Part shown: in pieces, positions 12,254 to 51,345 of the stretch
Numbering within the stretch: the stretch's first letter is position 1
Layout of the letters: every line of letters starts with the position of its first letter
Sequence record: OP599913.1
Direction: 5' to 3' (one strand)
DNA: 64,000 nucleotides
Position numbers and translations under genes: made by a program
The notes under the pieces: generated by a model
What the model was told of the DNA's origin: nothing
What the model saw: only the letters and a program-made list of their open reading frames with translations
The model's database searches: none

Positions 12254-15200
12254 ATGACAGACGAACAGAACACATCCCTTTCCTATGCTAAATGGTTGGT
12301 TAAGTACCTGAGATGTAACAACCTGCCCAAAGAACTGATCGATGATAAACGCCTCCGTATCGACTGGGAGGCTCGAACAGACGACGAAACCCTTTTAGCT
12401 CACTTCAATGAAGACAGCTTAAGTGGTATTAAGACTGTTCGTTTTCTCAAGGACTTTTTCAACTACCAAGCGGGTTATGATCGGGAGACCCGGAATACCA
12501 GTTTCCTCAGAACCACGGAAGTGTTCAGGCAACAGGGAATCAATAACTTTTACTTCATCCTCCAATTGAACAATCCCCTGTTGAAAGGGGTGGATCCCTT
12601 TGATCCTAACCTCACTCCTGAGCAACAGGTGTGGGTCCTGGAGGAGTGTCGGAGTAACTTTTGGTACTTCCTACGGGAAGTCTGCCGGTTAAAGCCGAAT
12701 CAGCCCTTCTTAGCGAACCGGGGGAATATCAGCTTTATTTGGTCGTATTTGAATCACATTACCACCTACATGATCATGCCGCGGCAACAGGGTAAGCAGC
12801 AGCGTAACAGTGCTAAGGTCCGTATTGTACCTAAGGATACCCTGAAGACTATTACCCCTCAGGATACTTGGAAACGGATTGAACACCTACGGGTGGGGGA
12901 TCAAGTCCTGGACCGTTCCGGGAAACCGTGTCAAGTGATTGGTATCCACCCCCAGGGTAAACGCCGGTTGTATCGTGTCATTACCAGTGACGGGCGAGCC
13001 ACGGATGTAGGGACTGAACACCTGTGGACCTTGAAGGATTATTCCAACTGCCTCAATGGACGTGCACTCTGGAATGACTATTCGACCGTTGATGTCATTA
13101 ACCTGTTGAAGAAGAAGGTGAAGCTTCAATTGCCGTTACCGGCTCCGGTACCCGGGAGTGAACAGGACCTACCTATTGACCCGTACGTTCTCGGGTTGAT
13201 CTATTGCGGGCAAGATCAAGACGGTAAGGTTATTATCCCCACGCGTACGGATGCGGTTAAACAGTACGTGGCTGATCTTCTCCCTCGGGGGGTAACAGTT
13301 ATTCAGGGAGTGGCTAACAGTTGCTTAGAACGGACTGATAACCAACCTTATTTATTCAACAGGGAACACGGTTTACCGGATCAATACCTAGAAGCCCCTT
13401 TAAACGCCCGGAGAGACCTCTTACAGGCGTTTTTAGACGTTAGGGGTAAGGTTGGTAGGGGTAAGGTCTTTATAGCCTTAAATCGCGTCCTAGGAGGTCA
13501 ACTGGCGTATTTAGCCCGTAGTCTAGGTGGAACCGGTAAAGTCACCAAGAACGGAGTAGAGATTACCCTACCGGAAGAGGTACCTCCGTTCAAGTTCAGG
13601 GAAGAGAATGTCGTCTTTGATAATCGGTTGCTGATCGAGCGGGTGACTTTCGTAGGGGATGACGATTGTACCTGTATTGAAGTCGATAACAGTGAACAGT
13701 TGTATTTGACCGATGACTTCATTGTGACCCACAACACGGTATCGGTTCAGGTGATTGACTTCTGGTTAACGTACATCATGGGCCGGGGGTATACGAGCCA
13801 CTTGATTACCTTGAAGTCGGATAACCGAGCTCAGTTCATTGCGGCTATTAAGCAGATACGGAGTTCCATTCCCTCGTATTTGATTAACTCGACCTACAAG
13901 GACAAGGATGCTGGTACCAGTCTGACCTACAAGGCCTTTGGGGAAGATAACGTTAATACGCTGTACATTAACGTCCCTCAGATCAGTCAGGATGCAGCAG
14001 GGGATCTCGGTCGGGGGTTACGGGTAGGGACTACCAACTACGATGAGTCCGGGTATATTCGGTTCATCGACACCATCATTGACGGGTGTTCCCCGTCCTC
14101 GCTAACGGAAATGGCGTTGTGCAGAGAGCAGGGGTTGCCGTATGGGATTACGCACATTACGACCCCCAATACCACGCTCCATCCCAGCGGGGAGTTTATG
14201 TTCAATAAACTCATGAGTGCAACGGAGTGGCGGGAGAAGTTCTTTGATTGCTTCAGTGAGAGTCACTTGAGGCAGATGTTACTCAGGGCTTCCCCTACGA
14301 AGACAACCTCTCCGTCAGTCTCCATGGTGTACAATTACCTTCAACTGGGTAAGGACAAAGCCTGGGTGCGGGAAACCATTGACCTGCTAGGATTGAGTTT
14401 GGCGAAAGCCAAGATCGACTTATTGCTCATGTGGGTGGAAGATGGGGAGAATCGGTTGTTTGACGATGTGACCCGGGAAGCCATTAACAACATGAAGCGG
14501 GACGTGGTGTGGAGTAAGGAGTATCGGGACTGTAACCTGTACGTGGACTTCTTTGTGACCCAACAGGAATTGTTGGAGATGGCAAAGAAGGAGTACAATG
14601 ACCATTTCCTGATTGGTGTGGATACGTCCTCAGCCATTAACAAGGATGCCTGCACCATTGTGATTCGCAGTATGAAGACGGGTAAGGTCATTGGGGTGGG
14701 ACGATATCCCTTAACCTTCTTGGATGATGTCACAGCCATTGTTGTGGATTTGCTGGACGTGATTCAGAACAGCACCTTGATCATAGAGCGTAACTACGCG
14801 CATCACATGATCGACAGTCTGTTGATTATGCTGCCGGCTAAGGGTATGGATCCCTTTAAACGGGTCTTTAACCAAATCTACCAAGACACCGTCAATAACG
14901 CTAAGGAGTTTGAGGAAGTCCAGAACACCAAATTTGCTTACCGGAATAAAGCGTTCTACCTGAAGTATAAACAATACTTCGGGTTCGTGACGACCAAGAC
15001 CACTCGGGACGTCCTGTACGGCCTCATCCAAGAGGCGGTTGGGAATACCGGGTACGGCCTCTGTTATGCGAAGCTCGCGGATGAATTGATCAACCTGAAA
15101 CTCAAGGGGGATCGAATCGACCACGATGCGAAGCAGCACGATGACTTGGTCATTGCGTGGCTACTGAGTTACTGGTTCATTAAGCTCGGGGAGAACAAGT

Positions 15201-15520
15201 CTTTGTACGGGATTCCTCCAGGGATTGCCTTAACGGACACCCGTAACCTACTGAACTCTGCTCAGAACCAAGGACGAACCGAGTATGAGCCGTACGTGGT
15301 TCAACTCATCGATAAAGTCCGGAGTAAGGTTCACAGCCTAACTGAAGAACTGATGAGCACCCAGGACAATATCTTAGCACTTCGTCTAGAGGTGGAGATT
15401 CGGAAGTTAGCCAAGATGTTGCCTCCGGAACAGAATCGCATGATGACCATTGACGTGCTGTTGGAGAACGCTAAAGTGGAACGCAACAAACGCCTACTGC
15501 AACAACGCAGAACAGCATAA
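12254..15520 (+). CDS. terL: Terminase large subunit, intein-containing (about 775 aa after splicing)
   Basis: Walker A MPRQQGK|TVS split by an intein, Walker B TNYDESG, nuclease motifs LIGVDTS and HDDLVIAWLL. Confidence 0.92.
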   Translation: MTDEQNTSLSYAKWLVKYLRCNNLPKELIDDKRLRIDWEARTDDETLLAHFNEDSLSGIKTVRFLKDFFNYQAGYDRETRNTSFLRTTEVFRQQGINNFYFILQLNNPLLKGVDPFDPNLTPEQQVWVLEECRSNFWYFLREVCRLKPNQPFLANRGNISFIWSYLNHITTYMIMPRQQGKQQRNSAKVRIVPKDTLKTITPQDTWKRIEHLRVGDQVLDRSGKPCQVIGIHPQGKRRLYRVITSDGRATDVGTEHLWTLKDYSNCLNGRALWNDYSTVDVINLLKKKVKLQLPLPAPVPGSEQDLPIDPYVLGLIYCGQDQDGKVIIPTRTDAVKQYVADLLPRGVTVIQGVANSCLERTDNQPYLFNREHGLPDQYLEAPLNARRDLLQAFLDVRGKVGRGKVFIALNRVLGGQLAYLARSLGGTGKVTKNGVEITLPEEVPPFKFREENVVFDNRLLIERVTFVGDDDCTCIEVDNSEQLYLTDDFIVTHNTVSVQVIDFWLTYIMGRGYTSHLITLKSDNRAQFIAAIKQIRSSIPSYLINSTYKDKDAGTSLTYKAFGEDNVNTLYINVPQISQDAAGDLGRGLRVGTTNYDESGYIRFIDTIIDGCSPSSLTEMALCREQGLPYGITHITTPNTTLHPSGEFMFNKLMSATEWREKFFDCFSESHLRQMLLRASPTKTTSPSVSMVYNYLQLGKDKAWVRETIDLLGLSLAKAKIDLLLMWVEDGENRLFDDVTREAINNMKRDVVWSKEYRDCNLYVDFFVTQQELLEMAKKEYNDHFLIGVDTSSAINKDACTIVIRSMKTGKVIGVGRYPLTFLDDVTAIVVDLLDVIQNSTLIIERNYAHHMIDSLLIMLPAKGMDPFKRVFNQIYQDTVNNAKEFEEVQNTKFAYRNKAFYLKYKQYFGFVTTKTTRDVLYGLIQEAVGNTGYGLCYAKLADELINLKLKGDRIDHDAKQHDDLVIAWLLSYWFIKLGENKSLYGIPPGIALTDTRNLLNSAQNQGRTEYEPYVVQLIDKVRSKVHSLTEELMSTQDNILALRLEVEIRKLAKMLPPEQNRMMTIDVLLENAKVERNKRLLQQRRTA
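12797..13735 (+). mobile_element. Class-3-type intein in TerL (313 aa) with degenerate LAGLIDADG domain
   Basis: Starts QQRNSAKV (no N-terminal Cys/Ser). Block B EHLW, block F CTCIEV, ends FIVTHN|T. Endonuclease motifs are decayed (LGLIYCGQ, FLDVRG). Confidence 0.88.
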
Positions 15521-15528
15521 GACCTGAC

Positions 15529-15559
15529 CCTCCTGGAGCCCCACAAGGGCTCCAGGAGG
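15529..15559. terminator. Terminator between convergent genes
   Basis: cctcctggagccc / gggctccaggagg 13-bp stem. Confidence 0.75.
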
Positions 15560-15613
15560 TATCGGGTTATTTCTGCTTCAGAAAGGGCGGTATAACCCAC
15601 TTAGTTACAAGGG

Positions 15614-15910
15614 TTACGCTACAGCAAGCAGTGCATGTTCCAGTTCTTGCAGAGTGTGACCTTTAGCCGGCTTGCCGTTGGCCAATAGGGTGAAGGCTTC
15701 AGAGGCGGTGGTATGATCCAGATACCAACGGTAGTTCGGCGAGTTTTCGTCGAACATCGGCGAGCGGGAGGGTTCACCTGGTGGTGTAGGGATCCAAGGG
15801 AAGATCATGAACACCCGGATTGACGCTGAACCACTTTCCACCATCACACTAACCATGGTGTGCGTATGGCACGAACAGAGAAGCTTTTGGGTCAAGGGGA
15901 GTGCGTGCAT
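15614..15910 (-). CDS. Hypothetical protein (98 aa)
   Basis: Start refined to MHALPLTQ, which has an AGGAG SD and avoids overlap with the upstream gene. Confidence 0.6.
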   Translation of the reverse strand: MHALPLTQKLLCSCHTHTMVSVMVESGSASIRVFMIFPWIPTPPGEPSRSPMFDENSPNYRWYLDHTTASEAFTLLANGKPAKGHTLQELEHALLAVA

Positions 15911-15957
15911 AGTGTCTGCTCCTACGCAGTCTGCATGAATAAATTCCTTGTAACTGG

Positions 15958-17319
15958 TTATTCGAAATAATCCTTGGACAGTACGCGCAGTACAATGAAC
16001 AAGCACAACGCCGTACGAGTGGTTAATACCCACTGAGGGGTTTTACGTCCGGTAATGGCAATCACAATCTGATCACCTAATTCCCGAATCGTCTTAACCA
16101 TGTCATTCCGACTCCGACTCGCCCCGTAAGCACCGCGCATCTTGATCAACACGTTGTAGACTTTACTGCGTTTGATGTTGTTGGCGTGCAGGTAATCAAA
16201 CAGGTGCAATACGACCGTTTCAGCAAACTGTTTGTACTCAGGGGTTTTGGGGTTGTTGTACCGCTTAGGGAACTCTTGCAGGGTATACGTCAGCATGTTC
16301 ATCCGAACATCCTCCAGTACACTGGCTGCATAGTTCATTAACTCTTCCTTGTAGAACGAGGTTTCCTCTGTCAGGATACGGTCCAGGTACTGAACGTGTT
16401 GATTCACGTCTTTCGCTACCGACTTAATGGTCAGTTCATCTCCGAGGTTAACCTTAGAGTTCTCCAGTTTAACGATGTTGGTCTTGTTCTTGACATCGTG
16501 GAAGACTTTGTTAATGTCGTTAATCGCCCTTCTAAGCCTGTTCTGAATATCTCCTACCATGTAAACGATTTTCTTATCATCGTTCATCTGGGTAAAGGCT
16601 TCGTAGTGGATACCGGTCTTAGGGTTCAGGATAAACTCCGCCCGAGCCTCAATCAACGCCCTCCAGCTTCCATACCGTTTAATGTCATACTTCAAGCTCA
16701 ACCGGTTATAGGTCTCCAAGACAACCTCTTTACGGGCGGTAAAGGGGTAGTCGTTGTGAATGATCGAAGTGAGGCATTTGTAGTGGTACATGCACACCAC
16801 ATCTTTCATGGCTTGATGTTTAACTTTCTCCGGTAACTTCGAATGATGAATCCGGTACAGCAAGTAAGGAATGGTCATATTGAACGCATCCCCTACGACC
16901 GCCCACTCTTTCTTGATGGCTGCCGCGTTGTGGAGGTTCTCTTTGAGTTCCTCTTCATCCAGGTCAATGATGTCATTGAACCATTGGTTACGGTCTGCGG
17001 TAGTAAAGGTGATCTTCTGCAACCCTAGGTACGGGCTCCCAAAGAACTCCATGTGGTCCACCACACCCATACGGCGGGTAATGAACGCATACACGTACTT
17101 CTGAAGATCACTCGCCCACCGAGGGGTAATCTCCAAGTACGTCGCCAGTCGGGTAAAGATCTCCAGAATGGCATGGTTACTCTGGAATTCCACCCCTGAC
17201 AGTAAAGCTTCATTCCCTTCCACGCCTAAGAGGTCACTATCAGGAGTCTTTGCCTCTTCAAAGAGACTAAAGATATCCTGGTCCCCTACGAGGTCTTCCG
17301 TTCCGTCTAATACTAACAT
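15958..17319 (-). CDS. Conserved jumbo-phage protein, probably virion structural
   Basis: About 453 aa from MLVLDGTED (AAGAGG SD). Acidic N-terminus with G-x-E motifs, in a late-type minus-strand unit. Confidence 0.7.
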   Translation of the reverse strand: MLVLDGTEDLVGDQDIFSLFEEAKTPDSDLLGVEGNEALLSGVEFQSNHAILEIFTRLATYLEITPRWASDLQKYVYAFITRRMGVVDHMEFFGSPYLGLQKITFTTADRNQWFNDIIDLDEEELKENLHNAAAIKKEWAVVGDAFNMTIPYLLYRIHHSKLPEKVKHQAMKDVVCMYHYKCLTSIIHNDYPFTARKEVVLETYNRLSLKYDIKRYGSWRALIEARAEFILNPKTGIHYEAFTQMNDDKKIVYMVGDIQNRLRRAINDINKVFHDVKNKTNIVKLENSKVNLGDELTIKSVAKDVNQHVQYLDRILTEETSFYKEELMNYAASVLEDVRMNMLTYTLQEFPKRYNNPKTPEYKQFAETVVLHLFDYLHANNIKRSKVYNVLIKMRGAYGASRSRNDMVKTIRELGDQIVIAITGRKTPQWVLTTRTALCLFIVLRVLSKDYFE

Positions 17320-17335
17320 TGAAAACCCCTCTTGG

Positions 17336-18184
17336 TTAATTCCGACGTGGTGTTGCCATCCGTATTGCTTCAATACGGGCTTGTTTATCCGACCACGTCA
17401 TGCAGTTGATCCATGTGTTCTTGAAATACTCTTTGTATTGGGTCCACGCGTCACTGTAGGCCTGTATATCGTCCCGTATGGCGTCTAGGGGAACGCCTGA
17501 GCGATAAACCGCCTCTTGGGTAGGTCGCCTACAGGTTTTGTAAATATACGCCTTAACGGCCAATTCAACGAGCTCTGCGAACTGCCGGTAATGACGAGGG
17601 TGAATACTGCTCATCCCTTCATCGTATTCCATGATTACTTTAGCACTCATGGAATACGTTCCCGCATTCAACCCAAAGATCACAAAGCAGTTATTACCGG
17701 TCATATGGACATTGGTGAACGTGACTGGCATACTGCGGTTAGAACTCAATCCCCCCAGTAAGCCATCCATCATGTCATTCAGTACTCCGGACCCACACAT
17801 CGTGTTCTCATTCACTCCGGCTCCTAACTGCCCTACTGCGGAACTCATACTCCCCAAATAGACTTCCGTCACACTGATGATCTTAGCACCCCGAGTCGTC
17901 GCTTCCGGTACGTTCACCTCTACGCACCCATTCCCCCGATCACGGATCATGGATCCTCCCAGATCCAACAACTCCGTCTTCCCACCCGCTACGTTACATT
18001 CCGGTAGAACAATACGGTGAATCACCTTCTCCCGTATACCCTGTTCCACAGTTGTCTGGTTAACCAGGTTATACCAATTCCCCGCATAGTTCGCATTGGG
18101 GGTTTCAAACGCTAGCTTTAACAAGTACTCGTCAATATCACTGCCACTCACTACACGATTGATCGCATGGTCTACTGGATTCAT
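17336..18184 (-). CDS. Conserved jumbo-phage protein, probably virion structural
   Basis: 282-aa ORF with GAGG SD, preceded by the ATGTTATGATTCCC late-like motif. Confidence 0.7.
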   Translation of the reverse strand: MNPVDHAINRVVSGSDIDEYLLKLAFETPNANYAGNWYNLVNQTTVEQGIREKVIHRIVLPECNVAGGKTELLDLGGSMIRDRGNGCVEVNVPEATTRGAKIISVTEVYLGSMSSAVGQLGAGVNENTMCGSGVLNDMMDGLLGGLSSNRSMPVTFTNVHMTGNNCFVIFGLNAGTYSMSAKVIMEYDEGMSSIHPRHYRQFAELVELAVKAYIYKTCRRPTQEAVYRSGVPLDAIRDDIQAYSDAWTQYKEYFKNTWINCMTWSDKQARIEAIRMATPRRN

Positions 18185-18804
18185 TTAAGGTAACCTCGTC
18201 TAACAAACCTTAACGGGTTTATACATCCCGTTAACTTAGGATTAGGGAATCATAACATCTTCCAGTGATTCCTCATTCGGTTTCCATTATATGTTCCACT
18301 TACCCAATTCTCATTTTGGAGGAGGGGGTAAGATTCTTTAGGACTGAGCGACATGAGCCTACGGCGAGTGGAGTGAAGGAGTAAAGAATCTTGGGGGAGG
18401 AGGCCCTACCGAAGGTAGAGTCCAGAGAAGAGAAAAGAGAAAATCCGAAGGAAAAACCTATTACTCCGTAATAGCTTTTGCTCTTTATATAAGCCCCGGA
18501 GGGGCTTATAAGGCAATAAAATTTAACTTTAGTATTTATTATTATTATAGGAAATTGCTTTTTTATTTAAAAAAGGAAAAATGAAGAGGAAATGAAAATG
18601 GGAAAATACCTTTTAAATATTCCCTAAATTTCATTTACTCTTAAAGAAGTACCCCTTTCAAAGTTAATTACCCCGACCGGCATTCCCGAACAGGGAAGCC
18701 GGCGTATAGGGTTTATACTGCAATATTGCAATTAAGGTTAATGGATTTCAGTTCTACATTATCATTGGGTAATGAAAGAATACAGTTATTCGTATTGATA
18801 TGTT
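18185..18804. other. Long divergent intergenic region with hairpins and an AT-rich core
   Basis: 620 nt with no credible ORF. Inverted repeats ttaacggg/cccgttaa, aagattcttt/aaagaatctt and tataagcccc/ggggcttata; AT-rich tract at about 18510-18670. Confidence 0.6.
18245..18258 (-). promoter_or_regulatory. Putative late promoter ATGTTATGATTCCC
   Basis: 13 of 14 positions identical to ATGCTATGATTCCC at 56383-56396. Both lie upstream of minus-strand genes and contain the TATG core. Confidence 0.5.
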
Positions 18805-18834
18805 TTGTTAAACCCAGAAGAGGAAGAGTGTGTA

Positions 18835-19383
18835 ATGACAACGATTGCTTATCGTGACGGTATAATGGCAGCGGATACCCGGGTGGTCAACGGGGCCGAT
18901 ATGATCAACCTCGGAGAGCAACGTAAAATCTACGAACCGGGGGAAGGAGAGTACTGGAGTGTCAATGGTGACCGTATTATCTGTTTTGGTTTGTCGGGGA
19001 GTCTGTCGGATCTGTTGGCCTTTAAAGAACTGTTGAGTGAAGGGATTACCTTTAAGACCAAAGCACCTGACCACCTCGTTGGGGACTCGAATATGCTCTG
19101 TGTGGGTGAACAGGGTAATGTTTGGCTGGTTTCAGCATATAAACAACGAGACGGGAGTATGGCGTTTACGGTGTCATGCGTACAACCCCCGTTTGCAATT
19201 GGATCGGGGGGTATTTACGCCAGTTCGGTGATGGCGGTGGGTAAAAGTGCGGTGGATGCAGTTAAAGTGGCGTGTAAGCTGGATGTCTATTCCGGTGGTC
19301 GTATTGATACCTGGGAACTCCCCCCTCCCCCAGCAACCCCCAGTAAGCGCCCTGAACCGGTCGCTGATAAGGCAGCAAAATAA
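18835..19383 (+). CDS. HslV/proteasome-beta-like Ntn (Thr) peptidase
   Basis: Start refined to M-TTIAYRDGIMAADTR, which leaves an N-terminal Thr nucleophile. FAIGSGG and KLDVYSGG motifs. Confidence 0.85.
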   Translation: MTTIAYRDGIMAADTRVVNGADMINLGEQRKIYEPGEGEYWSVNGDRIICFGLSGSLSDLLAFKELLSEGITFKTKAPDHLVGDSNMLCVGEQGNVWLVSAYKQRDGSMAFTVSCVQPPFAIGSGGIYASSVMAVGKSAVDAVKVACKLDVYSGGRIDTWELPPPPATPSKRPEPVADKAAK

Positions 19384-19404
19384 TCCCTAGGGGGGTAAGA
19401 CACT

Positions 19405-19620
19405 CGGAATGTAGGCGATGGAAACCTCAGCGTGTAGGTATTTTATGCCGATGACCTGCATTCACTCCATCGCCGGTCCTGGTGGGAAGGTTAGGAGTGT
19501 TAGACACCCACCACCCCTCAAGTGCCCAAGCCTATTCTGTCAGGCTTGAGAGGGTTGCCTACAAAACGCTCCGCCCCTCCAGCTCTATGTCACTATGATG
19601 TAGGGCTGGAGGTTTTACTT
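19405..19620 (+). ncRNA. Candidate structured ncRNA followed by a terminator
   Basis: Several helices: tgtaggc/gcctaca, ggcgatgga/tccatcgcc, ggtggg/cccacc, caagcct/aggcttg. Then a cctccagctcta/tagggctggagg stem with a T tract. No well-supported ORF. Confidence 0.4.
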
Positions 19621-19739
19621 CTTTTGTTTTTTATTTACCCAGGAGGGGATATCTTATACCGTTAGAGTGACCTGTTTCCACGCCATGGTTCTCTAGGTCA
19701 CTGTAAGGGTACAACGTTATTGATCCTCTTGGATGCGCT

Positions 19740-19796
19740 AACGGGTGGTGTTATGGTTATATCGGCGGTTACCCACCCGTTAGTCTTTTTTTTTGA
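19740..19796 (+). terminator. Terminator hairpin upstream of phuZ
   Basis: aacgggtgg / ccacccgtt stem followed by a run of T. Confidence 0.6.
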
Positions 19797-19891
19797 TTAC
19801 GCTAGATAATTTGAAACCTAAATTATTAGCAGGCTATTGGAGAATAGTCCTTTTTAATGACTTCCCTGTAAACCAAAGAGAGCGATTCGAT

Positions 19892-20854
19892 ATGTCTCAG
19901 ATTCAATACTACCTCATGGGCGGCGCAGGTATCAACATTGGCGCGGGTTTGAAAGAACATTCCCGCACGCGCGTGAACAGTGATGCGGGGATGGTAGGTT
20001 TCGATACCAGTGATAAGAACTTCACTGCGGCGTTCCCCATTGAGCAACTCGAAGGGGTGAACGGGAGTGGTAAGGATTCCACCAAGCACTACGACAAACT
20101 CCTCCCCTTCGTAGCGGCTAACCTGAAGAAACACCGTCCCGGTGTTCACAACATCATCGTAGCCAGTACCGCTGGTGGTACTGGGCGTGTTATGGCGATG
20201 ATTGCGTTGCGCCTGCTGGTCGAGTCGGGTAAGAACGTCATTCTCTGCCTGATCTCGGAACACACTTCCCTGGTGGATAAAGAAAACGCGGTCAACGCCC
20301 TCCGTTCCTTTGCTAACCAGTGCCAACCCAATCAGCTGAACCGTCCGGTGTGCTACATGGAGTTCGTTAATACACCGAACCTGACCCGTAAGGAAGTCAA
20401 CCATCAGGCGATTGATTCACTGAATCTCCTGAGTCTCCTCTTCGATCCTGGTAACACGGAAATCGACGAGGAAGACATTAAACGCTTCTTCAACTACTCG
20501 GCAGGGGGTAAAACCCGACCGGCGTTGAGCCGTATTCATTTCTACGACCAGGATGGTGCAGCGGACTATACCGGTAAGGTACCGGTCTCGGTCGCCAGCC
20601 TGTACCCGAACAACGATGACGTGGTTCCTCGGTTTATGGGATCGGTTTACCGGGCGACGGGTATCTTCTCCCCCAACAGTGATCGTCCGGTAGACATCAA
20701 AGAGCTGCACGTGACCCTCGATCACGGTGAAGCCCTGGAAGAACTGGAGAAAGAGATCGAAGGGCTGGAAACGGTTCAAGCTCAAGCTGCCGTTGACTTC
20801 TCTCAGCAGAAGGACATTTCGGAAGGATCGAACGATCTGGGCTTCATGCTGTAA
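19892..20854 (+). CDS. phuZ: PhuZ phage tubulin
   Basis: Start refined to MSQIQYYLMGGAGINIG. Tubulin/FtsZ-type motifs FDTS, GSGKD and STAGGTGR, with an acidic C-terminal tail ending in hydrophobic residues (DLGFML). Confidence 0.92.
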   Translation: MSQIQYYLMGGAGINIGAGLKEHSRTRVNSDAGMVGFDTSDKNFTAAFPIEQLEGVNGSGKDSTKHYDKLLPFVAANLKKHRPGVHNIIVASTAGGTGRVMAMIALRLLVESGKNVILCLISEHTSLVDKENAVNALRSFANQCQPNQLNRPVCYMEFVNTPNLTRKEVNHQAIDSLNLLSLLFDPGNTEIDEEDIKRFFNYSAGGKTRPALSRIHFYDQDGAADYTGKVPVSVASLYPNNDDVVPRFMGSVYRATGIFSPNSDRPVDIKELHVTLDHGEALEELEKEIEGLETVQAQAAVDFSQQKDISEGSNDLGFML

Positions 20855-20869
20855 GACAGACAGTGAATC

Positions 20870-20910
20870 GCTAAGGTAGGGAGCTCACGCTCCCTACCTT
20901 AGCCTTTATT
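20870..20910 (+). terminator. Intrinsic terminator
   Basis: gctaaggtagggagc / gctccctaccttagc 15-bp stem plus T tract. Confidence 0.8.
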
Positions 20911-20992
20911 ACGCTTTGGGGTATTTTTTATAATGGGTTTTTACTGAAATGGGCATTATTATACAGGCTTAATTAAATATAGGGGCTAGAAG

Positions 20993-21286
20993 GTGGCTAT
21001 AAGCTTCTCTGTTGATTTATCAAGGGGTTACCTATACCGACCTACCGGTCCAGGTAAAAACGTCGTGTTAAGGAAAATAGACCGGTTTGACGTGGTGCAC
21101 TGTTTACAGGCGTTAGGGTACCACAACCTTAACGAACGCAGTCTGAATCGTCGAGCCGCGGTCTTTATTCCGTCTCTGGAAGAGGACATCACGAAATTCA
21201 CGATCGGTGTACCGAGTGATGCACAGGTTCGTATTCGTGGGATTGGGAAGTGCTCCCAACGGTTATTGATTACATTTGTTTATTAA
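20993..21286 (+). CDS. Hypothetical protein
   Basis: 97 aa with a GTG start; first gene of a tightly packed cluster. Confidence 0.6.
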   Translation: MAISFSVDLSRGYLYRPTGPGKNVVLRKIDRFDVVHCLQALGYHNLNERSLNRRAAVFIPSLEEDITKFTIGVPSDAQVRIRGIGKCSQRLLITFVY

Positions 21287-21300
21287 GGAGACGTCGTCCC

Positions 21301-41800: not shown

Positions 41801-41817
41801 ATTTTATTCCAGTATTT

Positions 41818-42203: not shown

Positions 42204-42225
42204 CCCAACATAAGGAATTATCCCA

Positions 42226-43368: not shown

Positions 43369-43515
43369 TAGAAAATTTACTCTTTGGAGTAACTACCGAA
43401 GCCTACTCGGGATGTTAAGCCTGTGGAGCATCAGTGCGGTTAAGCTGAGCAATGAAGCAGGAAGTTTGAGGTTAAAACATTGGGATAAAGACAGTTTTAA
43501 CTCTTTATTGAAAAG
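43369..43515 (+). ncRNA. Putative TnpB omegaRNA scaffold / right-end region
   Basis: Contains AAGCCTGTGGAG and GAAGCAGGAAG, typical of tnpB 3' ends, then a gttaaaac/gttttaac hairpin. The exact boundary was not determined. Confidence 0.6.
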
Positions 43516-43542
43516 ACTGCTGTTGACTGTAATGGAGCCGTT

Positions 43543-45849
43543 ATGAGTAAAGAAAAATTGAATCAGGACCTGAAAGGTGTAAGTAGTGAGATCCGTGCCG
43601 CATTGGGTACAGAGGATCCGGTTCTTACCCCTGACAGTGCAGCGGGTCAATTCCTCCAGGAAGTCCGTTACAAGTATCCCTGTGGGGAGAATCAAATCCA
43701 TCCTGCGTTAGTGGGTGTCAGCAGTAACCTGATTCTCTTCCCGCACGAAGCCTCCGCGGGTCGTCTCTATATGGCGGGTAACATGATCCCTAAATCCGTG
43801 CCGACCGAAGGAGCGGGTGAACGGATGATGGTAACCGGGTACGAATTTGAGGAACATTACGGTGGAACGGCTCGTAAGGTCGAAGCCCCTGCGAATATGC
43901 TGGTGGAAGAGATCTTCTTCGTTCAGAGTCTGGTTCCGGGTAAGGATACGGATGACTGGAATTCGATTTACGTGGTCTTTAAGAACGACGAACAGAACGC
44001 CTACGACCTTCTGGAGCTACCTCGGTATAATACCCATAACCACTACGTTGGGTTCGAATATAAATACGATAAAGAGAAACTCCGTAAGCTCCGTAAAGGT
44101 GCCACTTTCGCTAAAGGGACCGTCTTCGCTAAGAGTCCCCGTATCAGTGAGAATGGGGAATGGTGTTTTGCAATGCCGACCTTGGTAGCCGCCTATTCGG
44201 ACCAAAGGACTGAAGAGGATGGCGTGCTTATCACCCGTTCCTATGCGGAACGTTCGGCCTGTATGTTCAAGCACGAGTTCAGCTATGAATGGAATGAGGA
44301 TGAATGGATTCCTCTGATGCTGTACGGAACGGACGAGAACCCCCAACCGCTTCCTGAGTCGGGTGATAACATTCGTGAGGATGGGATCGTCATGGGCTTC
44401 CGTCGCCGCATCAAAGAGAACGCGCTGGTTTCCCTGACCAAGAAGTCCCTACGAGAACCGGATCTTGTGTACGACAAGTTGTTTTACGCACCTGTGGATG
44501 CGGTTGTGATGTCAGTCACTGTTCGGTCGGATCGGATGAAGAACCGGTCCAATAACCGGGGTACGGATTACATCGAACAACACCACAATGCCATGCTGGA
44601 CCGCTATGAGAAACGCCAGAATGAAATGTGGAACAATGTGATCCGGTGGTACGAAGGGAAGATCGCTGCCAACCGCGGGGAAGACATCCCCATTACCTTT
44701 AACCTCGATACATTCATTCGGAACGCGTATGGTAACTATACCCGCAATGGGTTGGGTCGTATTAACCCGTTGGCCCGAGTGGAACGGTGGGATAAGCTGA
44801 AAGATTGGAACGTGACCATCGAACTGAAGGAACGGGTTAAAGGTCGTGTTAAATTCAAGTACGCGGGTTTGAACGGTGACAAAGGGGTGTGTGTACGAGT
44901 CATTGAAGACGACGAAGCCCCAACCTATCCGGACGGGACTCGGGCGGAGTTCATTAAAGATAACGTACCAGCGTTCCGTCGCCAGATCTTTTCGTTGCTT
45001 ATGGAACTGAGTATCAACTATGTGAACATGAACGTTCAACGGGAAGTCAGACACCTACGGCTACAAGGGGATTATGAAGGCGCTTTCCAGGCGTTGATGA
45101 CGTTCTATGAAACCGGTTTCCCTGAATTCAGTGAATTGGTTGCTCATGCGTTGGTTACGGAGGAGGAGAAACGTGAGCACGTCGACGATGTCTGTCGCCG
45201 GAAGATTTCCGTGCATGTGGTCAGTAACACGAAGTTGTATGGCGTGAACCTGATCAACGCCCTGCGTCGTCAATACCCGTATAAGCCGCAGAAAGCCATT
45301 ATCGTGAACGCACTGGGGGAACGGGTGGAAACCGAGAACCCTATCCTTATCAGCTGTCAGGACATTATGCTTCTGGATAAGTTTGGTACGGACATGAGTG
45401 CGCAGAGTATGCCGAAGGCTAACCTCTTTGGTATGCCAGCGAAGATGAACGAAGGCAGTAAATACGCCACCCCCATGAAAGACAGTAATAACAAGAATAC
45501 CGGTGAAACCGAAGGCCGGTTGCAAGTCAGTCACGCGGGCGGGCAGGAAATGATCAAGCAACTGGCTCTGGCGTATTCCCCCGAGAACCAGAAGAAAGCC
45601 TCCCAACGGGTTATTCGTGCGGATGATCCGTTTGAGATTCCTCGGTTGATTAAACCGGAGGAGTATTTGGGGAATCGGGCGTTGAAAATGGCGGTGGGAA
45701 TGTTGTCGGATTCGGGTTATCGGCTGCGGGCTGAACTGCCCAGTGATCGTCGGGAATATCCAACCTTTAACATGGATGAAATCCCAGGGTTAGATGACGA
45801 GACCTTGAAGCAGCTTCAGTCATCCGAGAAACCCACTCAAGAACCTTAA
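43543..45849 (+). CDS. Non-virion RNA polymerase beta-like C-terminal subunit (phiKZ gp71-73-like), uninterrupted
   Basis: SAGRLYMAGN, TEEDGVLITRSY and KFKYAGLNGDKGV (bacterial GDKMAGRHGNKG) motifs, plus NKNTGETEGR. Confidence 0.88.
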   Translation: MSKEKLNQDLKGVSSEIRAALGTEDPVLTPDSAAGQFLQEVRYKYPCGENQIHPALVGVSSNLILFPHEASAGRLYMAGNMIPKSVPTEGAGERMMVTGYEFEEHYGGTARKVEAPANMLVEEIFFVQSLVPGKDTDDWNSIYVVFKNDEQNAYDLLELPRYNTHNHYVGFEYKYDKEKLRKLRKGATFAKGTVFAKSPRISENGEWCFAMPTLVAAYSDQRTEEDGVLITRSYAERSACMFKHEFSYEWNEDEWIPLMLYGTDENPQPLPESGDNIREDGIVMGFRRRIKENALVSLTKKSLREPDLVYDKLFYAPVDAVVMSVTVRSDRMKNRSNNRGTDYIEQHHNAMLDRYEKRQNEMWNNVIRWYEGKIAANRGEDIPITFNLDTFIRNAYGNYTRNGLGRINPLARVERWDKLKDWNVTIELKERVKGRVKFKYAGLNGDKGVCVRVIEDDEAPTYPDGTRAEFIKDNVPAFRRQIFSLLMELSINYVNMNVQREVRHLRLQGDYEGAFQALMTFYETGFPEFSELVAHALVTEEEKREHVDDVCRRKISVHVVSNTKLYGVNLINALRRQYPYKPQKAIIVNALGERVETENPILISCQDIMLLDKFGTDMSAQSMPKANLFGMPAKMNEGSKYATPMKDSNNKNTGETEGRLQVSHAGGQEMIKQLALAYSPENQKKASQRVIRADDPFEIPRLIKPEEYLGNRALKMAVGMLSDSGYRLRAELPSDRREYPTFNMDEIPGLDDETLKQLQSSEKPTQEP

Positions 45850-45888
45850 CCCCATGATAGACTCACGGTATGGAGAGGAATGTAACTC

Positions 45889-48800
45889 ATGGTAATGAAG
45901 ATCAAACTCCGTGAATGGGCTAATTTACCAGAAGAAACTGTTCTCCGTTGGTTAAATACCCGCCGGTGGGTGGAGGTTACGGATGACCTGGACCAGGTCG
46001 CTTTAACGGATACCTACGCCCTGATCATTACCTGGCATGGAATGATCATCCACCGACATTATAACGATGTTCCCTATTCCATTAAGGAGATGGTACCCAG
46101 TAATAAGGTGGAAGGGGCTGAAGACACCGTCTATAACGATGGAACCAACGCGACGCCTATTAACCAGTTCTTAAAGGTCATTCTTCCTACGATTATTGAC
46201 CCGGTGGAAGTGGACGGGATTAAACGGCTTATTCATATCTGGCAGAATAAGCTGAATAACCTGCTGGTGGTGATGAGTGAACGTTACGTTATTTCAGCCA
46301 CCGCTGAATCCGTAGCGGAGTTCATGGAAGATGAAGGGATCTCTGGAATACGGGACCGTGTCCTGAGCAAGGAGATTTCAATTGATGAGGGTGAGCGGGA
46401 GTTTGCGGATTATGTCCGGACCTCTCATTCCATTGCCAACAACACCCTCACCCTGCTGTCGCGTACGGGCGGGGTGGCCATTAACCAGGCGTATCAGAAG
46501 ACGATCATCCGGGGTAAGGTCTTTGACCTGAACAACTCGATCATGCCGAATGCGATTACGGTTCCGTATGCGCATGGGATTACCAACCTGGCTGATATGC
46601 TGGGTGAACGGAATGCAGCGGGTAAAGCCGGAGTTTTGTCTTCAAAGATAAAAATCCCTGGTGGATGGAAGACCATGGGTAACATCCGGGTGGGTGATGA
46701 AGTCGTTACACCCGATGGAGGTACCGCTAAGGTGCTGGCAGTTCACCCACAAGGTGTAACCAAGGTTGTACGGGTGCACTTCAAAGACGGTCGATATACT
46801 GACGTTAGTCCAGATCACCTGTGGAAGGTTAGACGTCATCATTGGTGCAACGATAAAGCCATGGCTAAACTCACTCGGGAGGAAGTGGAAGAACGTGTAT
46901 GGCGAGTCATCACCACCAATGAGTTGAAAGACTATATTGGTCTGTCAACTAAGGTATACGTCCAACTGATTGAACCTGAAAGAAATGCCGATAAACCCTT
47001 CAAAATTCACCCGTATGTGCTCGGTGTCTTGTTGGGGGATGGATGCATTAGTCAAAAGGCTGTGGATATCACCAAACCTTATCAACAGCTATTCGATAAG
47101 GTCCAATCGCTATTGCCAGAACATTTGGAGTGTGTTTGGCGGAGCAATGGTGATAAAGAACCTAAAACGTTCGGGATCCGTTTTAAAGATCGTCGGTCCG
47201 AACAGCACATCAACTGGCATATCCGTGATGGCCTGAAGGAACTGGGCTTGTATGGAATGCGGTCGTGGGGAAAAGTCATTCCCGAAGAATATCTTCACGG
47301 ATCGGCTAAACAACGTTTGGAGCTCCTCCAAGGACTGTTGGACACAGACGGAACTGTGGACAAACACAAATCGGTTAGCTTTAGCTCTTCGTCTAAGTTA
47401 CTCTCCCTCGGAGTGCAATACTTGGTCAGAAGCCTAGGGGGGATGGCACGTCTCCAAGAACGTACTCCCCACTACACCCACAATGGAGAAAAAAGGGAAG
47501 GTCGTACGGACTATCGGGTTTATATCCGATACCCTCGACCAGAAGAACTCTTCACCCTAGACCACAAACGGGAACGTGCGGTCTCGCACCAGCATACGGA
47601 AACCCTGAGACTGCAAGTAACTCATATTGAAGAACGTCCTGATGAGGAGACACAATGCATTACGATCGATCATCCTGATCATCTGTACATTACAGACGAC
47701 TTCATTGTCACCCACAACAGCTTGACCAATAACGGCAAGGCCCTGAAATCATCGGAATGGTTCCACCGGAAGGTGCATATCCTGTCCGCTGTGGTAGCGG
47801 ATATCGATCATTTCACGGACTGTGGAACGACCACTACAGTGCCGATCCGAATTCCCAATATGCAAGCGGCAATGGCACTGTTGGGTAAATTCAGGGTAAC
47901 CGATACAGGAGAATTAGAACTCATTGATCAAACCACGGTGTGGTCAATTAAGCCAGGGGAGTGGGTTAATATTCGTAGTGTGGCCTTCTGTAATCACTAC
48001 AATAGTGCTTCACCCTGCCGGGTATGCTACGGGATGATGGCGAGCTCTATCCCGTATAACGTGATGATGAAGAAAGGGGCTGATGTCGGGATGTGGTGTA
48101 CCACCTCGATCTGTAACCCCATCGGTCAGGGAATGCTCTCCACCAAGCATTTCATTCGGAATGCAACGACCCGTAAGTTCGTTCCTGCGACTAAGGATAA
48201 GAACGTTATCTATTCCAATGGTGACGATATTTTCCTGACTAAGGAGCTCTGCGCACCAGGCACTGAATTGGTGCTCAAAGCCGATATTGTGAACATCCTC
48301 TCGGATATCCGTTCCTTGGATGTTCTGGACAACTTGAGCCTGGATAAACTCCCGTACTTCTCTGAAGTCACATTCCGCTATGAAGTCGAAGACATCATGA
48401 TGGGGGGTAAGACCCTCCAGCAGCACGCGGCCTGTACCTCGGTGTCGTCTCGGAATGCCCGGTTCTCGTTGGAGTTCCTGAACTATCTCCTGAGTAAAGG
48501 TTGGGCGAACGAAGGTAAGAAACATATTACCGTTGATTTGAGTGAATGGAATACGCTCAGTCCTATCTTCACACTGCCGTATGTTCGTGAAGACTTGGAC
48601 ATGCACAGGGCTCGGGTAGAGAACTTCATCACGTTCAATAAACGCAATAACGCCTGGAGACAGCAGATCGTTACACCCCGTCTCTTTGGTGAAGTCTTAG
48701 CGGAATACTGGGGGTTGATCAACCAGGAAACGAAAGGAATTAACATCATCCATCCTGAGGTCTTACTCTATTCCACGTTGTGTCGGGATCCCATGCGCGG

Positions 48801-48993
48801 GGATTATTCCCTGGCGAATGGTAATGGACCTAAGTATTTCGTGAACTTCCAGGAGTGTATCAAAGGCAGAGGGGCGGGTATGCTAATGATCTACGAGAAC
48901 CAGCAAAATGTGCTGAGCGATCCTAAGACATTCCGTGTGGTAAACCGTCAGGGGAGTCCGCTGGAGTGCTTCTTTAGCTTAGCGGTGAGTTGA
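45889..48993 (+). CDS. Non-virion RNA polymerase beta'-like C-terminal subunit (phiKZ gp74-like), intein-containing (about 670 aa after splicing)
   Basis: Bridge-helix equivalent AAGK|SLTNNGKALKSSEWFHRK, then DCGT, RSVAFC...CRVCYG and IGQGMLSTKH. Confidence 0.9.
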   Translation: MVMKIKLREWANLPEETVLRWLNTRRWVEVTDDLDQVALTDTYALIITWHGMIIHRHYNDVPYSIKEMVPSNKVEGAEDTVYNDGTNATPINQFLKVILPTIIDPVEVDGIKRLIHIWQNKLNNLLVVMSERYVISATAESVAEFMEDEGISGIRDRVLSKEISIDEGEREFADYVRTSHSIANNTLTLLSRTGGVAINQAYQKTIIRGKVFDLNNSIMPNAITVPYAHGITNLADMLGERNAAGKAGVLSSKIKIPGGWKTMGNIRVGDEVVTPDGGTAKVLAVHPQGVTKVVRVHFKDGRYTDVSPDHLWKVRRHHWCNDKAMAKLTREEVEERVWRVITTNELKDYIGLSTKVYVQLIEPERNADKPFKIHPYVLGVLLGDGCISQKAVDITKPYQQLFDKVQSLLPEHLECVWRSNGDKEPKTFGIRFKDRRSEQHINWHIRDGLKELGLYGMRSWGKVIPEEYLHGSAKQRLELLQGLLDTDGTVDKHKSVSFSSSSKLLSLGVQYLVRSLGGMARLQERTPHYTHNGEKREGRTDYRVYIRYPRPEELFTLDHKRERAVSHQHTETLRLQVTHIEERPDEETQCITIDHPDHLYITDDFIVTHNSLTNNGKALKSSEWFHRKVHILSAVVADIDHFTDCGTTTTVPIRIPNMQAAMALLGKFRVTDTGELELIDQTTVWSIKPGEWVNIRSVAFCNHYNSASPCRVCYGMMASSIPYNVMMKKGADVGMWCTTSICNPIGQGMLSTKHFIRNATTRKFVPATKDKNVIYSNGDDIFLTKELCAPGTELVLKADIVNILSDIRSLDVLDNLSLDKLPYFSEVTFRYEVEDIMMGGKTLQQHAACTSVSSRNARFSLEFLNYLLSKGWANEGKKHITVDLSEWNTLSPIFTLPYVREDLDMHRARVENFITFNKRNNAWRQQIVTPRLFGEVLAEYWGLINQETKGINIIHPEVLLYSTLCRDPMRGDYSLANGNGPKYFVNFQECIKGRGAGMLMIYENQQNVLSDPKTFRVVNRQGSPLECFFSLAVS
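46627..47718 (+). mobile_element. Class-3-type intein (364 aa) with intact LAGLIDADG endonuclease
   Basis: Starts AGVLSSKIK. Block B DHLW, motifs LGVLLGDG and LQGLLDTDG, block F TQCITI, ends FIVTHN|S. Confidence 0.92.
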
Positions 48994-49020
48994 GTGGGTG
49001 ACCCCGTTCGTTAGTGTGGA

Positions 49021-49056
49021 CCTCTTAAGGGGGTCCTCGGAATCCCCCTTAAGAGG
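49021..49056 (+). promoter_or_regulatory. 13-bp hairpin sequestering the helicase ribosome-binding site
   Basis: cctcttaaggggg / cccccttaagagg. The 3' arm contains the AAGAGG SD 6 nt before ATG 49063, and there is no U tract. Confidence 0.55.
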
Positions 49057-49062
49057 TTGATT

Positions 49063-51345
49063 ATGCGAGCAACAGCAACTATCAGCAAAGCGAATCATTA
49101 CTTCAGAATCAACGGGTTCTATGAGGAATTCGCGGTTCGGGTAATTCTACCGTTTTGTAAACTGAATCTCTGCAAGATGGCTAAGAAGCCAATACCGGGT
49201 ACCCGGAAGCAGGCGTGGTTTGTTCAACACGTCTTTGCTCGGTCGAATTATGACAAGAGTGAATACCGGCTACCCATTGAAACCCTTAAAGAGTTTGTGG
49301 AATTTGCAGGCTACAGGGGGTATAAAGAATCCCGCCTGAAGATTCAGGATGAACCGGAGATCGAAGGCAAGGATGTTGTATTCGAATTCAATCCAGGGTT
49401 TGATCAGTTCAGGGAGGGCCAAGGTGAATGGATCGACTACATGCTGAGCGATGGGCACCTGAAGGTCAATAACGCCTCTACGGGCTTTGGGAAGATGCAA
49501 CCGCTGTACGCGAAGATCAAAGTCCCGGGTGGTTGGAAGACCATGGGGGAGATGACCATCGGTACCGAGGTCATTGCAGCGGATGGTACGGTCACTCAGG
49601 TGACCGGTGTTTACCCGCATGGTAAACAACCCATCTACCGTTTGCACTTCGAAGACGGGCGTTATACCGACGCGGGACTGGATCACCTGTGGAAAGTGTT
49701 TACAGAGGAGACTCAGGCATGGACAGTCGTTGATACCCGTTCCGTACAGACCCTGTTGGCGAAAGAGCCAGAAGGGGTATTTATCCCTCTGTGTGAGCCT
49801 GAAGACGGTCCAGAGAAGCCCTTTGTACCGGACCAATTGGAAGGTTCCCGCCAACAACGGCTGGAATACTTACGGCGACTCATGGATGAGAAAGGGTATG
49901 TGCGTGATGACGGTAGCCTGTCCTTTTCCAGTGAGGATGAGGTGGAAAGTACTACGGTTCAATACCTGGTCAGGAGTCTAGGGGGTATTGCCCGAAAGGT
50001 ACCGTCTACAGGACTGTACCGCCGTAGGCAATACCGGGTGTATATCAAGTACCCTCGTCCCGAGGAACTCTTTACCTTAGCGAATAAGGGTGGTGACCTG
50101 GCATCAAAGTCGGGTAACCAGTCCCTTAAACTCCGGGTGAGTCGTATTGAATTCATTGGGGAACACGAAGCCCAGTGTATCTCTGTAGCGCACCCGGATC
50201 GTCTGTACATCACGGACGACTTCATTGTCACTCACAACACCTATATGGCCATCCACAGCATGGTGAAGATTGGTAAACGGACGTTAATCACCATGCAACC
50301 CCGTTACCAGATCAACTGGATACGGGAACTCAACAAGATCGTTAAACTCATTCCAGGGGATCTCTTAATCTGGGAGAATACCCTGGAATCGTTGTATGAG
50401 TGTTTAGAAGACGGGAAGTTTGATCCTAAGATCATTATTATTCCGATGTCTCGTATTGAGGTCTTCCTCCGTAAGGGGAAAGAGACCCGAGACGGGTTAC
50501 ATATGGATGATTTGATCAAACGGATCAATCCGGGATTAAGGATCATTGATGAAGGGCATGAAGCGATTCATCAGATCTTCTTGTCCTTAATGTTTGGGAA
50601 TATCAAGAAACTCTTCCTGCTCTCAGCCACCTTGAAAGCAGACGATCCCTTTACGAACAAGATGTACCAGTACTTGTTCCCTAAGCGGCTACGGTTAAAG
50701 GAGGCAGAACCCGAGCATTACATCGATGTAGTGGCGTACCTGTATCGCCTCAACACCCGTCGTTATCATCTCAAGACGGATCAGTTTGGGGCGTATAACG
50801 ATAAGACGTTTGAAAAGAGCATCTTAAAGTCGGGTGTACTCCTGGCATTCTACTTTAAACTGGTTAATAAGGCCTTTAAGGAGTATTACCTCAATGTGAG
50901 GCGTGAGGGAACGAAGTGCTTGTTCTTCTTCTCCAGGGTCAATATGTGCGATGCCATGTTGGAACTGTTCAGGAAAGAATATCCCGGTTGGGATTTCGAA
51001 ACTTTTACTGGGGATGATTCCAAGCTGAAAGATAAGAAAGACAAGTACTTAAAGCACGAGATCATCATTACGACTCCGAACAGTTGTGGGACAGGTAAGG
51101 ATATCGGGGGGTTGGTAACGGTGATCTGCGCCCACACGGTTGCGTCGACTCAGGCTAATAAGCAGATCATTGGACGACTCAGGGCGTTGTCGGGTAAGTT
51201 CAATAATGAGATCGACCCTGCCTTTGTGTTCCTGGTGTGTTTGGACTTAGCGAAGCACGTGGAATACTTGGGCAAACGGGAACAGGTGTTCTTTGAGAAA
51301 CAGAAGACCTTCAAGCGTATCAATTCGGAATGCTCCCTGGACTGA
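49063..51345 (+). CDS. Superfamily 2 (DEAH) helicase, intein-containing (about 512 aa after splicing)
   Basis: Walker A NASTGFGK|TY, IIDEGHE, LSAT and QIIGRLR motifs. Confidence 0.92.
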   Translation: MRATATISKANHYFRINGFYEEFAVRVILPFCKLNLCKMAKKPIPGTRKQAWFVQHVFARSNYDKSEYRLPIETLKEFVEFAGYRGYKESRLKIQDEPEIEGKDVVFEFNPGFDQFREGQGEWIDYMLSDGHLKVNNASTGFGKMQPLYAKIKVPGGWKTMGEMTIGTEVIAADGTVTQVTGVYPHGKQPIYRLHFEDGRYTDAGLDHLWKVFTEETQAWTVVDTRSVQTLLAKEPEGVFIPLCEPEDGPEKPFVPDQLEGSRQQRLEYLRRLMDEKGYVRDDGSLSFSSEDEVESTTVQYLVRSLGGIARKVPSTGLYRRRQYRVYIKYPRPEELFTLANKGGDLASKSGNQSLKLRVSRIEFIGEHEAQCISVAHPDRLYITDDFIVTHNTYMAIHSMVKIGKRTLITMQPRYQINWIRELNKIVKLIPGDLLIWENTLESLYECLEDGKFDPKIIIIPMSRIEVFLRKGKETRDGLHMDDLIKRINPGLRIIDEGHEAIHQIFLSLMFGNIKKLFLLSATLKADDPFTNKMYQYLFPKRLRLKEAEPEHYIDVVAYLYRLNTRRYHLKTDQFGAYNDKTFEKSILKSGVLLAFYFKLVNKAFKEYYLNVRREGTKCLFFFSRVNMCDAMLELFRKEYPGWDFETFTGDDSKLKDKKDKYLKHEIIITTPNSCGTGKDIGGLVTVICAHTVASTQANKQIIGRLRALSGKFNNEIDPAFVFLVCLDLAKHVEYLGKREQVFFEKQKTFKRINSECSLD
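49495..50238 (+). mobile_element. Class-3-type intein (248 aa) with a truncated endonuclease
   Basis: Starts MQPLYAKIK. DHLW and AQCISV motifs, ends FIVTHN|T. The first LAGLIDADG motif is absent and the second is decayed (LMDEKG). Confidence 0.9.

Follow-up and report, generated by a model that had tools for sequence, protein, structure and literature searches.

How one phage genome came to hold inteins of the same unusual type in several of its essential genes is the question raised by the DNA analysed here, a stretch of 64,000 nucleotides from sequence record OP599913.1 (the window). The host genes code for the large terminase (TerL), the C-terminal part of the beta' subunit of a non-virion RNA polymerase (beta'-C) and a superfamily 2 (SF2) DNA helicase, and an earlier note on this DNA had proposed that a single lineage of class 3 inteins spread among them within the genome. 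We consider it very probable that these three essential genes, together with a SNF2-type helicase gene beyond the window, each hold a class 3 intein of one family, that the inteins are not copies made within the genome, and that they stand at different stages of their life cycle. The polymerase-helicase stretch and the TerL gene of the window are 100% identical to Pseudomonas phage IR-QUMS-PaBa1-GHS-2021; with Pseudomonas phage EL, an Elvirus jumbo phage of 211 kb, the identity is 97.7-99%. Judged by these identities, the window is part of the genome of an EL-like Pseudomonas aeruginosa jumbo phage (Elvirus). Genome-wide questions were addressed on the EL record, which stands in for the genome of the window.

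The intein intervals of the window translate in frame and stop-free over the lengths given in Table 1, at the positions proposed earlier, and a tblastn search with the three inteins against the window returned just these three copies. They begin with QQR (TerL), AGV (polymerase) and MQP (helicase), each is preceded by GK, and all end with DDFIVTHN followed by T, S and T, respectively, so that the insertion directly after Gly-Lys described in the earlier note was found in every case. Class 3 inteins are defined by the lack of Ser, Thr or Cys at the N terminus and by the presence of Trp B:12, Cys F:4 and Thr G:5, with a +1 residue that is normally Ser or Thr (PMC2807308, PMC3196547). The signature reported for the window agrees with this definition: position 1 is Gln, Ala or Met, block B reads His-Leu-Trp (HLW), the Cys F:4 is present in a ..C-I-x-[VI]-.. 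context about 20 residues before the intein end in all three, the end is Thr-His-Asn and the +1 residues are T, S and T. The intein bounds are exact. The intein-free TerL proteins of phage OBP (..PRQSGK↓TVG.., the arrow marking the insertion site) and of the phiKZ-like phage fnug (..PRQTGK↓SVS..) bridge the TerL gap, and the alleles of phages vB_PaeM_GXNNE2 and GXNNA8 lack precisely residues 247-610 of the polymerase precursor and residues 145-392 of the helicase precursor. Since natural intein-free alleles and homologues fix the bounds, the residues at position 1 are certain. By all sequence criteria the class 3 assignment is thus sound, the splicing chemistry itself being presumed. The description of the hosts as three unrelated genes holds in part: TerL and the helicases are both P-loop nucleoside triphosphatases (NTPases) with the intein in their Walker A motif, and the RNA polymerase alone is a truly unrelated host.

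Table 1. Intein-bearing genes of the window, their inteins and the intein motifs (the arrow marks the insertion site).
Feature	Coordinates	Strand	Remark
Large terminase (TerL) gene, 1088-amino-acid precursor	12254..15520	+	open reading frame
TerL intein, 313 amino acids, Gln1..Asn313, +1 Thr, in Walker A PRQQGK↓T	12797..13735	+	
TerL intein, block B His75-Leu-Trp77 (B:10 to B:12)	13019..13027	+	
TerL intein, LAGLIDADG remnant, motif 1 PYVLGLIYCGQDQDG, motif 2 LLQAFLDVRG	13181..13447	+	read from sequence
TerL intein, block F:4 Cys293	13673..13675	+	
Non-virion RNA polymerase beta'-C gene (phiKZ gp74 homologue), 1034-amino-acid precursor	45889..48993	+	
Polymerase intein, 364 amino acids, Ala1..Asn364, +1 Ser, at ..NAAGK↓SLTNN..	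46627..47718	+	
Polymerase intein, block B His64-Leu-Trp66	46816..46824	+	
Polymerase intein, LAGLIDADG core, acidic residue in both motifs (..LLGDG, ..LLDTDG)	47011..47352	+	
Polymerase intein, block F:4 Cys344	47656..47658	+	
SF2-type DNA helicase gene (EL gp40 type), 760-amino-acid precursor	49063..51345	+	'DNA helicase' in EL annotation
Helicase mini-intein, 248 amino acids, Met1..Asn248, +1 Thr, in Walker A STGFGK↓T	49495..50238	+	
Helicase intein, block B His64-Leu-Trp66	49684..49692	+	
Helicase intein, block F:4 Cys228	50176..50178	+	

A fourth class 3 intein was found beyond the window, at 169186-169962 of the EL record (minus strand, about 169.2-170.0 kb), in a SNF2-type helicase gene of 948 codons. 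This intein of 262 amino acids (PGSGK↓AMPL...DDYIVTHN↓TFT) also has the HLW and the block F Cys; it is highly divergent, with a branch length of 4.2, and its nuclease region is degenerate. The phage record identical to the window likewise has four intein places.

Of 1.84 billion proteins searched with a profile built from the four EL inteins, 18,180 representative ones matched at E<=0.001. From the best 150 of these proteins and 16 named phage genes, 195 complete inteins were obtained, and His B:10, Trp B:12, Cys F:4, Thr G:5 and the terminal Asn were invariant in all of them (195/195). Gln and Met at position 1, which had been described as uncommon, are indeed rare, with 2 and 4 cases among 176 database relatives against 109 for Ala; the other residues at this position were Pro (20), Ser (8), Asp (8), Phe (7), Cys (5), Leu (4), Glu (4), Gly (3) and Asn (2). 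The junction was GK↓T in 113 of the relatives, GK↓S in 22 and GK↓C in 2, and the +1 residue was T, S or C in 140, 33 and 3 cases. The GK↓S/T context is therefore nothing special to this genome, since it is the norm of the family (137/176), and DDFIVTHN is likewise a motif found family-wide. The four EL inteins are members of a single, very large family carried by phages, which is usually housed at the GK↓S/T of a Walker A motif. In one metagenomic SNF2-type protein (P0008, residues 156-844) two inteins of the family stand back to back, the second, a Cys1 intein, directly after the terminal Asn of the first, so that the +1 residue of the first is residue 1 of the second.

Among solved structures, the profile matched five chains, with the gp41-1 intein carrying a grafted Trp-Cys-Thr (WCT) triplet (6RIZ) at the top; the only PDB matches were gp41-1 with and without the grafted triplet and the class 3 mini-inteins DnaBi1 of M. 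smegmatis (6BS8, E 1e-9) and DnaB1 of M. chimaera (6RIX/6RIY, E 3.7e-9). The M. chimaera intein is also inserted after a Gly-Lys, its native N-extein being modelled as SVGK. The AlphaFold (AF2) model of the helicase mini-intein had a predicted local distance difference test (pLDDT) score of 93 and a predicted template modelling (pTM) score of 0.90, and its best Foldseek matches were PI-SceI and 6BS8. The first of these, the LAGLIDADG-bearing VMA1 intein, was the top match (TM 0.71-0.76 normalised to the query) and shares the two-domain architecture, whereas it differs from the EL inteins in being a class 1 (Cys1) eukaryotic intein of about 10% identity. For 6BS8 the TM score was 0.85 normalised to the target, with a root mean square deviation of 3.0; DnaBi1 and DnaB1 differ from the EL inteins by their bacterial hosts, by an identity of 13-15% in the structural alignment and by the lack of any nuclease remnant. 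A further known counterpart is the prototype class 3 intein, MP-Be DnaB of mycobacteriophage Bethlehem, which like the EL inteins lacks an N-terminal nucleophile (its residue 1 is Pro), has Trp B:12, Cys F:4, Thr G:5 and a +1 Thr, and contains a LAGLIDADG nuclease, its host being a phage gene for a helicase-type ATPase (PMC2807308). It occupies another gene and site, and its splicing was shown experimentally, whereas the EL inteins are known from sequence. The TerL1-a inteins of mycobacteriophages, like the EL TerL intein, sit between the Walker A Lys and Thr, a 'classic' P-loop site (PMC5050341), in a different terminase family and in other phage hosts.

Following the biochemistry of class 3 inteins (PMC2807308, PMC3196547), the block F Cys would attack, after translation, the peptide bond that follows Lys(-1), the N-extein would be transferred to the +1 Thr or Ser, and cyclisation of the terminal Asn would free the intact enzyme. 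Splicing is presumed to work because the interrupted enzymes are essential to phages that form plaques and because the catalytic intein residues are all intact. An insert could instead be a dead intein, with the host function supplied otherwise, as in the class 3 pseudo-intein Arth_1007 of Arthrobacter. Class 3 inteins of this dead kind are on record (PMC3196547), most of the nuclease is gone from the helicase and SNF2 inteins, and the long branch of the SNF2 intein would suit a decayed element. However, the Arthrobacter dead intein lacks Cys F:4, whereas His B:10, Trp B:12, Cys F:4, Thr G:5, His G:6, Asn G:7 and the +1 Ser or Thr are intact in all four EL inteins. The hosts are also full-length, single-copy and essential, with conserved exteins, and the frames are open with a protein identity of 95.6-100% across isolates, barring two records with a split polymerase match, which makes a dead intein at any of the sites extremely unlikely. 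Very unlikely, too, would be a class 1-like or class 2-like route, for instance a direct attack by the +1 residue or the use of a Ser1. The polymerase intein of phage phiRU starts with Ser-Gln-Thr, and Ser1 or Cys1 does occur in a few WCT-bearing inteins (PMC2807308). Against such a route, Gln, Ala and Met at residue 1 are incapable of the class 1 acyl shift, the WCT triplet is absent from class 2 inteins, is invariant in the family and co-varies with the lost N-terminal nucleophile, and Cys F:4 is essential in the prototype (PMC2807308).

The phiRU polymerase intein (OU343168) is 96% identical in DNA elsewhere and has the Ser-Gln-Thr start in place of Ala-Gly-Val. It opens with the nine bases AGCCAGACC, similar to the nine with which the C-extein opens (AGCTTGACC). 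This start is a natural Ala1/Ser1 polymorphism and may be a recombination footprint.

The lineage of the inteins was investigated by a careful maximum-likelihood tree of 50 inteins (IQ-TREE, LG+C20, 273 profile columns, unrooted), a set that keeps the nearest neighbours of each EL intein and from which MP-Be DnaB was left out. The EL TerL intein was sister to that of Shewanella phage FishSpeaker (99/84) and lay within a TerL-only clade (100/98, 99/96), grouping with the TerL inteins of FishSpeaker, of Erwinia phage Joad and of PDCC-1. The EL polymerase intein fell in supported clades (97/95, 98/94) whose other members are inteins of further jumbo phages, hosted by helicases and polymerases, and the EL helicase intein stood outside these clades, beside two metagenomic inteins (91/80). 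Forcing the trio together lost 71 log-likelihood units and was rejected by the approximately unbiased (AU) test, with a p-AU of 0.0036. The three inteins thus do not group together, the outcome that the earlier note had itself named as speaking against its proposal, and a spread of one lineage within this genome is not what the tree indicates. The idea of a spread among non-homologous hosts survives at another scale, that of different phages: host labels switch at least 17 times on the 50-row tree, at GK↓S/T sites, so that exchange between helicases, TerL and the polymerase is common from phage to phage.

Pairwise identities showed the same pattern. At 27%, the TerL intein is less similar to the polymerase intein than to the TerL inteins inserted at the same site in FishSpeaker, Joad and RisingSun, the last also an Erwinia phage (36-40%). 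Between the polymerase intein and the one carried by the gp40-type helicase of Raoultella phage VB_ZK_P1, both 364 amino acids long and starting with AGV, the identity is 57%; the polymerase intein shares 55% with the FishSpeaker SNF2 helicase intein, compared with 39-51% with its own neighbour in the window, the helicase intein. That one lineage multiplied inside the genome, the copies being each other's closest relatives, therefore seems unlikely to us, although all copies share the signature and the DDFIVTHN (or DDYIVTHN) end, the polymerase and helicase genes are adjacent with inteins similar at the level just given, and a clade of these two inteins is not rejected (19 units lost, p-AU 0.22). 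The shared end carries little weight against the trio result, since it occurs family-wide, and on a metagenomic contig with both sites occupied (L033) the two inteins are just 33% identical. The same figure led us to drop the idea that the polymerase-site intein derives from its neighbour in other genomes too. The reading we favour is one of separate histories, in which the TerL intein would belong to a TerL-specific lineage common to other jumbo phages, and the polymerase intein would come from the lineage of helicase inteins and have settled at a GK↓S outside any P-loop.

This last site lies in the polymerase itself. The host is homologous to phiKZ gp74, which in the non-virion RNA polymerase makes up the C-terminal half of beta'; chain D of PDB entry 7OGP (PHIKZ074) was matched by the C-extein with an E value of 8e-23 and by the natural intein-free allele with 1.5e-30. 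The bridge helix of gp74 extends from L242 to Y279 (PMC8287921), and since the last N-extein residue, K246, aligns to gp74 K254, within these limits, the intein splits this helix, which is a mobile element in the polymerase's catalytic centre. The sequence at the site, GERNAAGK↓S, is Walker A-like but one residue longer, and the host is not an NTPase; insertion between the Lys and the Ser or Thr of a true Walker A motif was found in TerL and in the helicase and not in the polymerase.

A search with the C-extein gathered beta'-C homologues in 78 clusters, of which four are occupied at exactly the same place of the bridge helix (the EL type, P0173, P0197 and P0218); the other 74 have proteins of 580-673 amino acids (most 660-673), too short to hold an intein. 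Empty alleles mostly have GK↓S at the site, and some have GK↓A, GM↓S or SK↓S; those with Ala at +1 would be unable to support splicing. In the tree the four polymerase inteins are not monophyletic: P0173 and P0197 pair (91/91) at the base of a clade of 15 rows, and the EL intein and P0218 nest among helicase inteins. In P0173 and P0197, which are metagenomic (loci L034 and L033), the WCT triplet is kept, the penultimate His is replaced by Arg or Ser (..VTRN, ..VTSN), and block B reads His-Asp-Trp or His-Glu-Trp.

The helicase inteins of VB_ZK_P1 (gene 46), Proteus phage 10, BUCT660, FishSpeaker and PhiPA3 (gp233) belong to the same family and occupy the same GK↓T Walker A site as that of EL. 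VB_ZK_P1, Proteus phage 10 and BUCT660 also have the gene order of EL, polymerase beta'-C then helicase, but their neighbouring polymerase gene is intein-free (about 660-675 amino acids), whereas EL has the full-length relative in the polymerase gene and a truncated one in the helicase. One might suppose that the polymerase intein moved, fairly recently, out of a helicase Walker A site and into the polymerase bridge helix of this same phage, and that the nuclease-less helicase mini-intein, 1.8 kb away, is perhaps co-converted with it. This is a tentative idea, and we think it rather unlikely. If it were true, a class 3 intein could settle at any Gly-Lys↓Ser/Thr junction, beyond look-alikes of its nuclease target, homologues with GK↓A or GM↓S at the polymerase site would be immune, and co-conversion during homing of the polymerase intein would explain why GXNNE2 and GXNNA8 lack both inteins. 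In DNA, the polymerase site is most similar to the helicase site of VB_ZK_P1, with 22 of 42 nucleotides in common, which is suggestive at most. A nuclease target shared at the DNA level across the insertion sites was considered and set aside, only a GGNAAR↓A core being common to them.

The inteins also differ in the state of their nuclease. The polymerase intein carries the acidic residue of both LAGLIDADG motifs and is the only one with a significant Pfam LAGLIDADG_3 match (PF14528, E 2.8e-12), together with PF05204 Hom_end. The TerL intein has lost one of the two acids, with an Arg at the catalytic-acid place of motif 2, and gave no Pfam LAGLIDADG match at E<0.01. In the helicase intein, motif 1 is absent and motif 2 is degenerate (LMDEKG, with Lys at the acid place). 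In terms of a homing cycle, the polymerase intein would be at the stage of an intact double-motif LAGLIDADG nuclease, present or absent among isolates; the TerL intein, with one catalytic acid lost, would be at the stage of fixation in all isolates, and it was indeed found in 10 of 10 Elvirus records; and the two helicase inteins (SF2 and SNF2) would be at the stage of truncated or degenerate nucleases. The pattern would fit the usual cycle, with an active nuclease where empty sites remain and decay where the intein is fixed.

Empty sites were found among close relatives. GXNNE2 and GXNNA8 have an intein-free polymerase gene of 670 codons and an intein-free helicase gene of 512 codons and keep the TerL and SNF2 inteins. 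Their intein-free proteins align with one clean gap each and are about 99.8% identical, one residue being changed per protein. Both the polymerase and the helicase intein are present in the window, MIZ-Pa99, EL, phiRU and HHBS47_1. The exteins of GXNNE2 differ by 0.89% from those of the window and MIZ-Pa99 and by about 2% from those of EL, phiRU and HHBS47_1, with a parallel divergence of the inteins by 1.8-5%. Because the empty alleles are nested among occupied ones, they suggest loss, replacement by an intein-free segment, or ongoing homing in the population. Over a wider range of phages all four combinations exist for the two adjacent sites: both occupied in EL and in contig L033, both empty in GXNNE2, the polymerase site alone occupied in contig L034, and the helicase site alone occupied in VB_ZK_P1, Proteus phage 10 and BUCT660. 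Comparison of the window with GXNNE2 (PV400809) showed a synonymous change beside each junction, at 46626 (Lys-1, AAA/AAG) and 50241 (Thr+1, ACC/ACA). These changes were considered as marks of nuclease-immune empty alleles, a proposal rejected on finding that the occupied phiRU also has AAG and the occupied MIZ-Pa99 has ACG.

Several points weigh against the account given above. The helicase and SNF2 inteins stand on long branches and their positions are unsettled, so that their histories are uncertain; the tree is unrooted, and the direction from helicase to polymerase is deduced only from the much wider occurrence of helicase hosts. The splicing mechanism of these inteins is predicted from motifs and homology, and the activity of the nucleases from two motif residues only. 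In MIZ-Pa99 and HHBS8_1 the polymerase intein was matched in two pieces, and the frameshift of MIZ-Pa99 could be a sequencing error or a real break in an essential intein-bearing gene.

In the MIZ-Pa99 record (PV472050) this frameshift is an insertion of one nucleotide about 520 nucleotides into the polymerase intein, which leads to two annotated coding sequences; it coincides with the place of a 6-nucleotide insertion or deletion in EL and phiRU.

The core of these findings is ordinary, because class 3 inteins, their bias to phages and their preference for P-loops are established; their proposed phage origin has also been published (PMC2807308, PMC3196547, PMC5050341). The additions are modest, namely the site in the bridge helix and cultured phages that form a natural presence/absence pair. 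The polymerase intein would be a natural example of the class 3 family outside an NTPase, in a multisubunit RNA polymerase. The P. aeruginosa phages of the pair are about 99% identical and differ only in carrying the polymerase and helicase inteins, which would allow homing, co-conversion and fitness cost to be measured in a nucleus-forming jumbo phage. Full-text literature searches found no paper describing the EL inteins and none on a phage RNA polymerase with an intein in its bridge helix. InBase reportedly listed four 'PhiEL' inteins, and the EL genome paper of 2005 reportedly mentions intein-associated LAGLIDADG nucleases.

As for the host genes themselves, TerL is 58% identical to the FishSpeaker TerL and 49% to the OBP TerL in a four-way alignment, and the gene is labelled terminase large subunit in phage records. 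The helicase gave a weak Pfam Helicase_C match, and for its start the ATG at 49063 is a likelier candidate than the TTG at 49057.

Intein homology misleads automated annotation in jumbo phages. GXNNE2 has the label 'terminase large subunit, intein-containing' on its intein-free polymerase and helicase genes; the record identical to the window names both of these genes terminase and leaves TerL as a 'hypothetical protein'; and the original EL record (AJ697969) gives TerL and the polymerase the name 'ATP-dependent DNA helicase'. Some GenBank records already bear an 'intein-containing' note. In one further record, Pseudomonas phage vB_PQ1 (PQ516283, 184 kb), genes of the window were matched in scattered pieces, in up to 17 places, with annotated repeat regions, and this record looks like a rearranged or mis-assembled Elvirus genome.

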